Positions 60-5,272 of a stretch of DNA of 64,000 nt are shown piece by piece (the stretch's first letter is position 1; each line of letters starts with the position of its first letter). Origin of the DNA: Selaginella moellendorffii (taxonomy: Eukaryota; Plantae; Lycopodiophyta); NCBI RefSeq assembly GCF_000143415.4, contig NW_003314271.1:682001-746000 (forward strand), given 5' to 3'. A program made the position numbers and the translations under genes. Under the pieces are notes generated by a model, which was not told the origin of the DNA, did not search any database, and saw only the letters and a program-made list of their open reading frames with translations.

Positions 60-2506
60 ATGGAGATATGGAGGCTCGACGCCGCGGAGCCAATCGTCGA
101 GCAGGTACTAGCGGCACAGCCATGGGAGGCGCTTCAGCGGCGTAAGCTATTCCTCCTCAATCACGTCGATGGCGAGATCGAGGACGAGGACGGCGACTGC
201 GCCAATGGCTTCATCCTCGCCGATCCAATACCCTCGCCCTACCTCGGATCGCTGTACGTCGGCGCTTGCAGCGGCCGCAAGCACAAGCGCGAGATCGAGG
301 TCGCCGATCGCCAGCCGGAGCACCAGATTCACGCCAGCGATGCGTGGTTCTGGTGTAATCTCTGCAACAAGGAGGTTTCTTTGGAATCCCTGGCGCTCGC
401 GAGCTCCTCCGGGTGTTCTTGCCTCTTTTGCCGCGGCTGCCTGGAATCGGTGGTGTCCAGCGCGATCAAGGACGTTCTTCGCAGGAATCCTCCCCAGGTT
501 TTGGATCCCGGCCCCAGCAGCAAGTCTCAATCGAAATGCCCCAAGCTGATGATCGATCTCACGAAGGATGACGACGATGGCGACGACGATTGTAGCATCG
601 TTGGCGAGGTAGCGTCTTCTTCTTCGTTTTCTTCTTTGTGGGACTATCTCCCATGTCCGTCACCATTCTGCCGGGGGAAGTTCCGGCTTACAGACATCCA
701 GTCCGTCTCTCCGGATTGTTTCGCCCAGTGGGAGGCAGCAGCGAGCGATGCTCTCGTCAAGAACAGTGGCTCCTTCGTCAAGTGTCCGGGTTGCCAGGTC
801 GTGATCGAGAAAGTCGAGAGTGATTTGCCTCCGGGGCTGGCTCTTTCCGGGGTGCCGGAGTTTGACAGAACGGTTCCTTTCACCGAGCTCGACGACGATG
901 GCAATCGTCTCTCTCGCCGCGCCATGGTGGACAAGGCCGTGAATCGCTTCCGGTGCGTGGTTTGCAGCATGGACTTTTGTGCTGCGTGCTTGCAACGCCC
1001 CTACCACCTGGGAAAGACTTGCGAGGAGTTCTCGCTCGAGAAGAAGGCTCTGCGGTGCATCTACTGCCATCAAGTGTGTCGGCACGAGATCAAGTCGCTC
1101 GTCGGTGGGAATGATGTTGAGAGTTCTTCGGTGAAGGATATACGAAGTCGGCTTGAGCAGGAAGGGGTGGACAGTGGATGGTGCGTGGAGAAAAGTGATC
1201 TTGTCGCGGTGGAGAGGTTGTGCGATCGTGTCTGCCAGGAAATGGAGTGTAGGCAACGGTTGAAACAAGCTTGCACGCGCAACTTACACTGCGGACACCA
1301 CTGCTGTGGAGTGAGAGGTGAACGAAATTGCCTACCTTGTCTAGAGGTACCTTGTTAGGATTGCCTTGTGTCCTTGTGTGTTCTTCCTCGGTTTTATGCT
1401 TTTGGTGGTGGTGGATGCTTCCTTCTTGACGTTCATTTTTCTTCGTGTTTGTTTCCTTGCTTCGAGTTCGTTGAGCTCCTGATTTTGTTTTGTGCTGATG
1501 TAAACGACTGTTTTTTCTTCGTTTATCTCCTCGTCTCCAGTTTTTCATGAATCTATTTCACTTTCTTTTTTGGCAAAATAGTTCACACTCTCTACTTCTT
1601 CCTATACAGGAGGAATGCCAGAAGCAGAAGCTCTCGGGAAAGGCATTGGCGTCTGCTGATGACTTTTGTGGCATTTGCTTGGTGGAGGCGCTTCGTTCGG
1701 CCCCTTCAATTCTGCTTCAGTGTGGCCACATTGTGCACTTGCATTGTGCCAAGCGACAAATCCAGCAGGGATGTCCTGGCCCTCAAATCTCATTCGGGTA
1801 TTTAAAGTGCCCCCAGTGCAAGCTTCTTATGAAGCACAGTAAGCTGGACGCGGACATGCACAAGCATTTGACGACAATGGGCCAGGTAAGCAACACGCTG
1901 GTTTTAAACTTCTTGGAACTCTTTCATTGTTGCGTTTGCAGATCAAAGCCAGAGCAATCAAACGTTTGAAACTGGAAGGAGTTTATGACAAGCTCAAGGC
2001 TAGTTGCAGCTCTGATGACAAACTGACTTCCTTGGCCTTGGAGCAGTACCAGTATTATATGTGCAGCAAGTGCAAGAACCCGTACTACGGTGGGAAGCGG
2101 AACTGCGGCCCAAACTTGGCGTAAGAGTTTTCTTTGTTTGCGCATTGCATAAGTTCTCAGAGCGTGGATTCTTGACAGGGAGGACCAAGGACGGCAATAC
2201 GATCCCTCGGAGCTCGTTTGCGGTGGATGCAGTGCTGGTGCCGATGGCAAGTGCAAGCTTGGTCACGGTAACCAGTTCGTCGAGTTTAAGTGTCGGTTTT
2301 GCTGCTCCATAGCGACGTTTTTCTGCTTTGGAACCATCCACTTCTGTGACAGTTGTCACGGGATCTGGCCTCAGCAGCACTCGAGCTCGTACGTGCTTCC
2401 TCAGTGCAAAGGGCCCCAACACTGTCCACTGGGAATAGCTCACGCTCCAAACGGTAAGGAGCATTGTTTGGGTTGTTCTATGTGTAGAAGCCAAGAGCAG
2501 CTATAG
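60..2506 (+). CDS. RING1-IBR + MYCBP2/Highwire/RPM-1-type RING-Cys-Relay (RCR) E3 ubiquitin ligase; 4 exons (60-1346, 1610-1885, 1942-2120, 2179-2506)
   Basis: GT-AG splicing joins the ORFs in frame. C-terminal half reads ACTRNLHCGHHCCGV...DDFCGICLVEALRSAPSILLQCGHIVHLHC...GPQISFGYLKCPQC...YYMCSKCKNPYYGGKRNC...YDPSELVCGGCS...EFKCRFCCSIATFFCFGTIHFCDSCH...CPLGIAHAPNGKEHCLGCSMCR, colinear with the MYCBP2 C-terminus. N-terminal half has a RING-like CNLC..CSCLFCRGC..CPSPFC and an IBR-like KCPGC..RCVVCSMDFCAAC..YHLGKTC. Confidence 0.85.
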
Positions 2507-2630
2507 AGCAACAAGCCGTACAGATTTTTCCAAAGGCGAAGTTCTGTTCTTTTGTCTCGTTTATTTATTTTGGAGTTTACGCACAGAGGTAAATGTTTTC
2601 TTAAGTATTATTTTAATTTTTTTCTTCTGC

Positions 2631-3342
2631 TTAAACTGGTCCTGGTGCTGGCGCTGGTGCTGGTGCTGGTGGTTTTGCAGGACGAGTGCAACACTCGAGC
2701 GTTCCATCATCGTTGGTTGCGAGAGTAGCAATTTCCACGGCTTCCCCGCTGCCATACTTGCAACTCAGCTTGGTTTCCTCCAACGAGCAGCTGCTTCTTG
2801 GATCTGAGGTACACGTCTTGACATTCAGGGAGGCTTTGTAATTCTCTGTACTGTCGACTCTCTTGCAGGAAGCCAGCAGCATCCCGGTGGTGTCGTTGTA
2901 AGACGTAGCAGTGCAACTATCGAGAAATCCACCGCAGGAGCCGGAGCCAGAGCCGTCGCTGGTCCTGCAACACACCAAGCTTCCATCGTTGTTGCTGGCG
3001 TACGTCTCCAGGTCGACGGGGAAGGAATCGTTGTTGGTGCAAGTGAAGATCGCGTTTGGTGCTAGCGAGGAGGTCCGGAGCTGGCAATCGGCGACTCCAC
3101 CGCACTTTTCTATGCTCAAGCTCGAGTTGTGCATGGAGCCATTAACCGCTCGGCAGCTGGCTTCTAGGACTTTGTTTGTGTAGGAGAGGGGTGTACAGCT
3201 CCTCAGGAAGCCTCCACATTGATCGCAGCTCTACAAAAGAAAAAAAAAAAAGTCAAGTGTTTTGGAGTCTATTTACTATGCTTACCACAAGCAGTAATGT
3301 GTTGATTACAACCACCAGCAAGATGCATACAAGCTTATCCAT
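2631..3342 (-). CDS. Secreted Cys-rich cyanovirin-N-homology (CVNH)-like protein, paralog 1; exons 3342-3286, 3230-2631
   Basis: Signal peptide MDKLVCILLVVVINTLLLV|SC across a phase-0 GT-AG intron; two internal repeats CGGFLxSCT...LxASC...DLxxxAxNxDGxLxCC resembling CVNH F.xSC/L.A.C/DL...N.DG.L motifs; Pro-Ala tail. Confidence 0.7.
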
Positions 3343-4407
3343 TGTGTATGGCTAACACTGACGAGTGGTTTGTTAAAGTACCTTCGTTAGGTCCGGAATG
3401 TATGTTAAAGGACAGAATGGCACCGAAGACAGCCATGTATGTTGTATGTGTATGCTAGGGGCGTATGATACTATGCATGTAAAAGTCTGATGAAAAACAT
3501 TTAATAATAGGATTTTAAGCTTAGTCTATTGTAATTAGTTAAATGACAATAAGCTAAACTAGACCATTTGTTTCTTATAATTAATATTATTGGATAGAAT
3601 GGACTTTGCTCAACTAACAAAAACCTGCTAAAGTAGAATCAAAACAAAGGGAAAGAGGATACCTGAGTGCATTCCAAGTAATGAGTTGCATGTTCTTCAT
3701 ATTCCAAGCTGTTGATTCTATAAAACTTCACATCCTTGGAATTCCGGGGAGACTCGCGTGCGCTCAGTCCAGAATGCAACGACAATTTCCTTAATTCGGT
3801 GTCTGATATTTCTTCCGAGCTGTGCGTCCGAGCCTACCATTGCTTCGGGCCTCCTCTGCCTTTGCTTCATAGCAGCGTCATTAACTCTGTTTTGCCCAGC
3901 AAAGACAGATAAATTTCTTGATTGAACTCCTTTATTTTGTTGGCGAGCTTAATTTGCGTTTTGAGAGCAGATTTCCAAGACCTTTGAGAACAAGAAAACA
4001 AAAGGAACAAGCCTTTAGGTAGTTTAGGAAGAGGTTAAGAATCTCAAGCTTATTGTACTTGCGCGTCTCTCAGCGAAAAAGGAACTGATTTTCTTCGCCG
4101 TAGCTCGTTTGGCGTTCATGGGACGAGCTCTCAAACGGCTATCCGACCTAGAAGACAAACCTGACTGGGACGAAACCATCGCTGCTTCGGCTCGTTTTAT
4201 CCAGCCGTAATCTAGGATGTATTGCTCTGCCCTAAATGCTCTCTCCTCTTCCCCCACCACGAGCGTGACGAGATTCTTTGGCTCGCTTGCCCTCACCGCT
4301 CAGCCTAGAATCCATTGAAAAACTTGGCCATTAAAGTGGTTCATAAACCGGTTGGTTACTAAAACATTTAACCAGTTTATGATACACCGTTCTGTGCTTA
4401 ATACCGG

Positions 4408-4580: not shown

Positions 4581-5272
4581 TTATTCTTGGAGAACGCAGC
4601 ACAAGAGCACTCCTTCGAGGTTGCCGGCGACGCGACCCAGATCGATCGGCGCGCCGTTCCCCTCCTGGCAGCTCAGCTTACCTTGGTCCAGTTTGCAATT
4701 TGTGCTGGCGCTCCTGGTACAAGTCTTGAGATCGATGTAGGCCTCTTCGTTGGGCGGCTTGTCATGGCCCCTCTCGCAGCTCGCGACGAGCAATCCAGAG
4801 GCCTGATCGTAGCCCATGGGCGTGCACGAGTCGAGGAAATCGCCGCAAGCCTCGATCTTGGGATTGTTGCAGCAAACGATGGATCCGTCGTCGTTCCCGG
4901 CATAGGTGTTCATGTCGATTGCTGCCTCGCGGGCATCGACGCAGACGAGTGGAATCGATGGTTCGACGTGGACTTCGCAGCTGGAGACTCCATTCCCGCA
5001 GCTTCTCACGTCGAAGTCTGTGGTGTGGGGGGTACCCTTGATTGTGCTGCACTCGACTTTGAGGACAAAATTCTCATACGAGAGAGGTGTGCAGCTTTTC
5101 ATGAATCCTCCACAAGGTTCAGCGCAACTCTAAGCAAATATCAGGACAAAAGAAGAAAATTTAGCGACAATCAAGATGGAAATTCTAGAATACTTACAGC
5201 AAAGAACTTGCATTTTGCAAAAGAGATGATCGCCAAGGTCCAAATCCAGCTAGCTCTAATTGCTTGCTTCAT
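4581..5272 (-). CDS. Secreted Cys-rich CVNH-like protein, paralog 2; exons 5272-5198, 5129-4581
   Basis: Signal peptide MKQAIRASWIWTLAIISFAKCKFFA|SC with the same intron position and phase as paralog 1; repeats CGGFMKSCTP..IDMNTYAGNDDGSIVCC and CGDFLDSCTP..IDLGRVAGNLEGVLLCC. Confidence 0.7.

Follow-up and report, generated by a model that had tools for sequence, protein, structure and literature searches.

Two thioester-forming classes of ubiquitin ligase, RCR and RBR, contain the closest described systems for the gene considered here. According to a 2022 review (PMC9120709), the RCR class consists of MYCBP2 alone, a protein that is conserved from C. elegans to mammals. The literature searched regards MYCBP2 as an animal protein and as the one RCR ligase; full-text searches found no paper on non-animal RCR proteins or on an RBR-type front end in such proteins; automatic database names include "RCR-type E3 ubiquitin transferase" (Cavenderia, Anaeramoeba) and "highwire" (Balamuthia).

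The gene lies in a 64,000-nucleotide stretch of the Selaginella moellendorffii genome (assembly GCF_000143415.4, contig NW_003314271.1, positions 682,001 to 746,000 of the forward strand), hereafter the window, in which all coordinates below are given. Four exons spanning 60-2506 on the plus strand splice to encode a protein of 689 amino acids (aa), in agreement with the approximately 690 aa of the original prediction:

60..1346, plus strand: exon 1, residues 1-429, with an N-terminal acidic motif, RING1, IBR, a knuckle with SAP-like insert and most of a pre-RING finger
1610..1885, plus strand: exon 2, residues 430-521, with the RCR RING (C449 to C499) and the first part of the linker helix
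1942..2120, plus strand: exon 3, residues 522-581, with linker helices, the start of the tandem-cysteine (TC) domain and the C576 codon (2104-2106)
2179..2506, plus strand: exon 4, residues 581-689 and stop, with the TC domain, the C630 codon (2324-2326) and H641

The closest database entry to exon 1 is an uncharacterised 689-aa S. moellendorffii protein, LOC9631788 (P0001; 99% identity). The spliced protein differs from this entry at nine residues, consistent with an origin from the other haplotype.

Taken together, the analyses below make it probable that the gene encodes a ubiquitin ligase in which a RING1-helix-IBR unit is joined to a full RCR by a rigid zinc-rich connector, with the RCR performing the chemistry. 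The front end may serve as an accessory, and the layout is probably ancestral.

The front end, the RCR unit and the connector between them

Exon 1 had been predicted to encode a RING-like finger split by an acidic insertion, together with an IBR-like finger. The corresponding features are:

354..671, plus strand: RING1 (C99 to C204) of the RBR type, a C4C4 variant as in RNF144A, with C7-P-x3-C8
507..623, plus strand: disordered, partly acidic insertion within RING1 between ligands 6 and 7 (residues 150-188)
711..767, plus strand: RING1-to-IBR helix (residues 218-236), a predicted helix that aligns within the RING1-IBR of RNF216, HOIL-1, ARIH2, parkin and HHARI
783..1022, plus strand: IBR (C242 to C321, C6HC) with a long 53-residue loop holding a conserved helix

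RING1 follows the pattern C99-x2-C102 ... C119-x-C121-x2-C124-x2-C127 ... C199-P-x3-C204. Each of the eight ligand positions is conserved across the 78 relatives against which conservation was scored, ligand 4 being histidine in 66 and cysteine in 12; it is cysteine in the streptophyte group, as in RNF144A. The proline after C7 is present in 57 relatives and the C7-x4-C8 spacing in 51. Such an extended final loop is reportedly typical of RBR RING1 domains (Dove et al. 2017). Beyond C8 there is no conserved basic residue. Ligands 6 and 7 are 71 residues apart in Selaginella versus 10-29 in 66/78 relatives, and the insertion that separates them (residues 150-188) has pLDDT < 50. The second finger, C242-P-x-C245 ... 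C299-x2-C302-x4-C307-x2-C310-x5-H316-x4-C321, keeps all eight ligands in at least 77 of the 78 relatives; no other part of the front end is as well conserved.

Searches with the single sequence gave weak scores, both for Pfam IBR_1 (E 0.008) and, in the PDB, for RNF144A RING1 (E 0.095). Using the isolated region, the Pfam IBR match (E 5e-5; six of eight close relatives also matched) stood at 23.7 bits, 0.6 below the cut-off of 24.3. The weak single-sequence scores and the shortfall from the Pfam cut-off favour a reading in which the exon 1 fingers are generic zinc fingers without RBR ancestry that resemble RING1 and IBR through a chance cysteine pattern. However, the scores improved once relatives were added: a profile of eight sequences detected RNF144A RING1 at E 1.1e-5, and the same profile detected the HOIP RBR (E 0.005), the two domains, RING1 and IBR, being aligned in matching order.

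The predicted fold pointed the same way. Residues 91-440 were modelled with AlphaFold on the basis of the 78 relatives (pLDDT 84.3, pTM 0.69). When the model was compared with known structures, nearly all of the best 50 Foldseek matches were RBR ligases; the top 47 rows were all RBR ligases or isolated RING1 or IBR domains from them. VIA-align superposed model residues 4-239 (protein residues 94-329) on RBR ligases with Z 9.9 to 8.0, including RNF144A (1WIM; Z 9.9), RNF216 512-646 (Z 8.5, root-mean-square deviation 3.7 over 125 residues) and HOIL-1 277-419 (Z 8.0), and also placed the front end on ARIH2, parkin 233-378, HHARI 184-325 and CUL9. The isolated IBRs of RNF31 and RNF216 gave Z 5.2 and 5.0, respectively. 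Because the alignments cover RING1, helix and IBR together, the domains match as one unit and not as separate fingers. The chance-pattern reading is already contradicted by these profile and model comparisons, and we regard it as hardly credible. Residues 94-330 are instead assigned as an RBR-type RING1-helix-IBR unit on the basis of profiles and predicted structure. Both predicted fingers were thereby confirmed, with matches by profile, Pfam and fold, and with the acidic insertion located between ligands 6 and 7 of the first.

Upstream of RING1, land-plant members and some of those from green algae conserve a short acidic N-terminal motif (VDGE.EDEDGD ... ADP.P, residues 34-58; 159-233). This motif is predicted with low confidence and belongs to no known family.

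The remaining exons encode the RCR unit. Residues 443-508 of exon 2 matched the MYCBP2 RING (5O6C, 6T7F) at E 1e-16 with invariant ligands, exon 2 also matched Pfam zf-RING_2 at E 8e-6, and exon 4 matched the MYCBP2 tandem-cysteine domain (5O6C) at E 1e-25. A full-length AlphaFold model (pLDDT 80.8, pTM 0.69) recovered 5O6C in Foldseek with E 1.6e-18, TM 0.66 and 38% identity. The upstream cysteine C576, the downstream cysteine C630 and H641 are found in all 78 relatives, and position 592 is glutamate or aspartate in 65 of them. Going by chain numbering, we take C576 and C630 to be the equivalents of MYCBP2 C4520 and C4572, the relay cysteines reportedly described by Pao et al. in 2018. Judged by alignment and predicted fold, the protein has a MYCBP2-type RING and a TC domain with both relay cysteines, as RCR ligases do. 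C576 falls in a lower-confidence loop of the full-length model, and this loop is probably mobile. The family shows no conservation at the position of MYCBP2 F4586, suggesting that the threonine preference may differ from that of MYCBP2.

Between the IBR and the RCR RING lies a connector with the following elements:

1056..1250, plus strand: Cys4 knuckle, C333-x2-C336 ... C392-x4-C397, from invariant columns in 76-78 sequences
1122..1226, plus strand: SAP-like helix-loop-helix, residues 355-389, within the knuckle loop; model helices 358-368 and 378-389, with high pLDDT
1272..1346, plus strand: first part of the pre-RING finger, C405, C411-G-H413-x-C415 and C424-L-P-C427, from invariant columns

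The pre-RING finger (CGHxC...CLPC) is completed by C432 in exon 2 (1610-1618), directly followed by the RCR RING. The pLDDT exceeds 90 over most of residues 321-570 (one 10-residue block is at 69 and one at 80), which suggests a fixed connection from the IBR through to the TC domain. Animal MYCBP2 has a knuckle and a pre-RING finger right before its own RING, for example at residues 4350-4412 of P0151 (knuckle 4350-4380), and a search covering eight proteins recovered the finger of animal MYCBP2 with E values of 1e-15 to 1e-17. Since both elements are shared with animal MYCBP2, the connector belongs to the RCR side and forms an extended RCR unit; it lies outside the crystallised MYCBP2 fragment, which begins near the RING.

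In a protein from the sponge Sycon ciliatum (P0045, 744 aa), the combination of pre-RING finger and RCR-type RING occurs three times in tandem. No tandem-cysteine domain was detected in it by the profiles used.

The RCR had been proposed to take the place of the Rcat domain of RBR ligases. Pfam detected no Rcat or IBR family after the IBR in 76 relatives, a PDB search with a profile of this stretch gave no match, and hhalign of the post-IBR stretch against the family's own IBR reached a probability of only 2-6%. The spacing of the knuckle, C-x2-C ... C-x4-C, is that of the first zinc site of Rcat. The knuckle loop contains no conserved cysteine. A vestigial Rcat in the knuckle was considered and rejected, there being no profile, Pfam or PDB support and the knuckle being present in animal MYCBP2 without an IBR. 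The lack of both a profile match and a conserved loop cysteine indicates that no Rcat follows the IBR, and a complete RCR stands where it would be, as proposed. With neither an Rcat nor a conserved cysteine at the RBR catalytic place, the front end cannot perform RBR catalysis alone, and the protein thus falls outside the RBR ligases as strictly defined.

The knuckle loop measures 10-29 residues in 48/78 relatives and at least 50 in 23/78, mainly of the green lineage. In the Selaginella protein it holds the piece that the original prediction called a SAP-like motif. Here the shape stood, the model having a helix-loop-helix at residues 355-389, but family membership did not: Pfam returned only sub-threshold matches to the RNF34/RFFL SAP (E 0.072) and ARMET_C (E 0.11), each in one of 76 relatives, and assignment to the SAP family was rejected. 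The piece is an insertion in the knuckle loop, found mainly in the green lineage, that bears a resemblance to SAP and nothing further. In common with the SAP motif proteins PIAS, RNF34/RFFL and the C-terminal domain of MANF, it has two short helices and a loop within about 35 residues and lies near a ligase RING; unlike them, it sits inside a zinc-knuckle loop and occurs mainly in the green lineage.

Transcripts of the gene

RNA contigs over positions 1-2700 were obtained from four runs belonging to four separate studies. Contigs joined exon 1 to exons 2-4, arguing against separate transcription of exon 1, and introns 2 and 3 were spliced out inside single long contigs in all four runs. For intron 1, two donors were joined to one acceptor at 1609|1610. 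The in-frame donor at 1346|1347, which together with the open reading frame (ORF) and the donor GT at 1347 defines the end of exon 1, was used in three of the four runs (joint 1346->1610). An upstream donor at 1317|1318 was used in all four, at a contig depth equal to or above that of the in-frame joint; the contigs read this joint as 1315->1608, and the cut was placed +2. Its use removes the following segment:

1318..1346, plus strand: 29-nucleotide segment spliced away via the alternative donor, from RNA contigs and translation

On translation, use of the alternative donor shifts the frame to a stop at 1657-1659. The resulting 435-aa product retains RING1, IBR and the SAP-like piece and lacks the RCR, having neither the RING nor the TC domain. 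Exon 1 might thus mainly provide a separate product, either a RING1-IBR-SAP decoy or regulator or an RNA that is merely degraded. The recurrence and depth of the 1317|1318 joint are what speak for this reading, along with the position of the short frame's stop, which has two junctions downstream. However, this same position makes the frame-shifted RNA a likely target of nonsense-mediated decay; moreover, contig depth is a poor measure of isoform share, the in-frame joint recurs across runs, and eukaryotes at large conserve the fused ORF. Full-length versions also occur in the assembled transcriptomes of further species, Psilotum nudum (P0005) among them. We consider a mainly separate exon 1 product improbable. 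The contigs begin at position 100 and so give no RNA support to the ATG at 60 or to the 5′ end; this start is attributed to a haplotype difference at position 99.

Downstream of the stop codon, the 3′ untranslated region contains a 92-nucleotide GT..AG intron (2589-2680, plus strand), with contigs from all four runs jumping from 2589 to about 2682. In two of the runs (X1 and X2) the contig continues for some hundreds of bases past this intron, antisense to a minus-strand ORF at 2634-3134. This ORF, which has a Pro-Ala repeat at its end, and a second minus-strand ORF at 4584-5102 both code for cyanovirin-N homology (CVNH) domains, with Pfam E values of 4.5e-5 and 4e-8, respectively.

Distribution and history of the layout

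A profile search of 1.84 billion representatives returned 2,923 proteins at E <= 0.001, of which 657 had E <= 1e-30. An IBR stands ahead of the RCR in 142 of the 155 top representative proteins. Upstream of the IBR, the RING1 motif C-x2-C ... C-x-[CH]-x2-C-x2-C was found in 92 of these 142, and many of the remaining 50 look to have a cut N-terminus. Members were found among streptophyte algae (Chara, Chlorokybus, Closterium), green algae (Cymbomonas, Myrmecia), land plants (the moss Ceratodon, the lycophytes Selaginella and Diphasiastrum, and the ferns Psilotum, Ceratopteris and Adiantum) and Amoebozoa (Protostelium, Cavenderia, Balamuthia, Clastostelium, Physarum), as well as in the stramenopile Platysulcus, the ciliate Protocruzia and the metamonad Anaeramoeba. 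Both RING1 and IBR are present in Ceratopteris, Protocruzia and Anaeramoeba, and an IBR only in Physarum and in a partial Adiantum entry.

IBR plus RCR is therefore the common layout of non-animal RCR proteins and not a one-off hybrid. The hybrid RBR/RCR architecture put forward for the Selaginella gene holds insofar as RING1-IBR is joined to an RCR, but it is not special to this gene; proteins of the same kind in protists and algae, for which a search had been advised, include those of Chara, Cymbomonas, Protostelium and Protocruzia. It follows that the RCR class is not an animal invention and forms a large pan-eukaryotic family whose usual form carries RING1-IBR. Its members of 500-800 aa offer small, expressible enzymes for the study of the relay and of non-lysine ubiquitination, and members occur in organisms with genetics, such as mosses, Ceratopteris and dictyostelids.

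An unrooted tree was built from 134 RCR units. All proteins in it that lack the IBR while having over 250 residues upstream fell in one clade (support 98), the named members of which are all animal MYCBP2/Highwire, and one change of state explains the presence and absence of the IBR. An IBR remnant in animal MYCBP2 was sought with relaxed family-IBR profile searches and rejected, the only scores being near zero and located on a B-box-like finger (P0151, ~4251-4295). Amoebozoa stand closer than plants to animals, so that, given vertical descent, a fused ancestor with one replacement on the animal line makes the simplest history. The RING1-IBR-RCR layout is thus probably the ancestral eukaryotic form of RCR ligases, in which animals replaced RING1-IBR. 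No seed plant appeared among the matches listed, though seed-plant proteins would be expected to score above Chara, and this suggests that seed plants lost the gene.

A further-reaching history would make RCR ligases derived RBR ligases. Under this scheme the last eukaryotic common ancestor would have had RING1-IBR and, after it, a cysteine-bearing zinc ribbon, a second RING and relay loop would have been inserted between the two, and animals would later have dropped RING1-IBR. The C-terminal half of the TC domain (C619-x2-C622 ... C630 ... C637-x2-C640) would then be the Rcat counterpart, with C630 catalytic. If true, the two RING-dependent thioester classes would have a single origin, and an E2 bound to RING1 may still load the relay. 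An hhalign comparison of the TC domain with the family IBR gave a probability of 6-9%, which does not support the TC domain as an Rcat, and this equivalence is held only within the derived-RBR scheme, which we consider quite unlikely.

Putative roles of the front end and comparison with known ligases

The solved MYCBP2 mechanism and the invariant residues suggest that the RCR does the chemistry. The RCR RING would hold a ubiquitin-charged E2 (E2~Ub), and ubiquitin would pass to C576 in its flexible loop, then to C630 and then to the substrate, probably onto a hydroxyl group. The front end may be a docking site for ubiquitin: RING1 would take it up as E2~Ub, or the helix-IBR face would bind it in free or attached form, and such docking may supply or regulate the relay. 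The small (500-800 aa) RCR proteins have no folded domain other than the RCR and RING1-IBR. The E2-contact position is isoleucine or valine in 76/78 relatives for the RCR RING versus leucine, valine or isoleucine in 50/78 for RING1, and this better conservation makes the RCR RING look like the main E2 site. Given this stronger E2 signature and the absence of RING1-IBR from animals, we rate RING1-IBR as an accessory docking platform for ubiquitin or E2~Ub; by analogy with RBR ligases, the chance that it does dock ubiquitin as their RING1-IBR does seems to us about even.

Two other roles were weighed on the same evidence. In the first, which takes up the two-E2 or priming/extension chemistry of the original prediction, the protein would be a two-entry ligase: RING1 binds its own E2~Ub and loads C576 directly, as RING1 loads Rcat in RBR ligases, or an E2 on RING1 extends a chain on the ubiquitin that the RCR has attached beforehand. 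This would fit the complete retention of RING1 ligands, the presence of L101 and P200 in Selaginella, the common C7-x4-C8 spacing, the best superposition of RING1-IBR being on the E2-Ub/Ub transthiolation complexes of RNF216 and HOIL-1, and the probable mobility of the C576 loop. It would fit less well with the weaker E2-contact conservation of RING1 and with an RCR that works in animals without RING1, and a second entry point appears rather unlikely.

In the second, RING1-IBR would be a regulatory sensor whose helix-IBR face binds a ubiquitin-like protein or ubiquitin itself, whether free or in chains. Without engaging an E2, it may switch the RCR on or off or hold a ubiquitinated substrate (compare HOIP, HOIL-1, RNF216, parkin and ARIH1). 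The conservation of RING1-helix-IBR as one rigid piece, with the IBR motif best conserved, would agree with such a role, as would the weak E2 signature of RING1 and its position as part of the sole candidate recognition domain in the 500-800-aa proteins. On the other side, the long conserved insertion in the IBR loop is without counterpart in solved RBRs. We consider a purely E2-independent sensor possible, if somewhat doubtful.

Several points weigh against the preferred reading of an ancestral RCR ligase with an accessory docking front end. About half or more of the intron-1 junction depth, itself a poor guide to isoform share, belongs to the frame-shifting donor, so that part of the RNA is unable to encode the RCR. 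Only some two thirds of relatives have a hydrophobic residue at the E2-contact position of RING1, compared with 97% for the RCR RING, making E2 binding by RING1 uncertain, and the animal MYCBP2 relay works without RING1-IBR, indicating that the core chemistry does not depend on the module. The tree being unrooted, the term "ancestral" leans on the species tree and on assumed vertical descent, and the absence of seed plants is based on the best matches listed only.

Compared with MYCBP2/Highwire/RPM-1 (5O6C, 6T7F), the Selaginella protein aligns end to end across the RING, linker helix and TC domain and shares both relay cysteines, the histidine, the acidic residue, the Cys4 knuckle and the pre-RING finger. 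In contrast, it has 689 aa where MYCBP2 has about 4,600, it lacks RCC1-like, PHR and other large animal-specific regions, and it carries RING1-IBR where MYCBP2 has a B-box-like finger ahead of the knuckle.

Compared with the RBR ligases (RNF144A, RNF216, HOIL-1, HOIP, ARIH1/2, parkin), it has RING1, helix and IBR in the same order and relative arrangement, and resembles them in its RNF144A-like C4C4 RING1, the CP-x3-C last loop and the lack of a conserved basic residue past the last ligand. It differs from them in having neither an Rcat nor a catalytic cysteine after the IBR, in its long disordered RING1 insertion and 53-residue IBR loop, and in the second RING and relay domain that come after the IBR. 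The layout thus links the RBR and RCR classes, and it prompts the questions of whether RING1-IBR loads or gates the relay and of why seed plants gave up the gene and animals the module.

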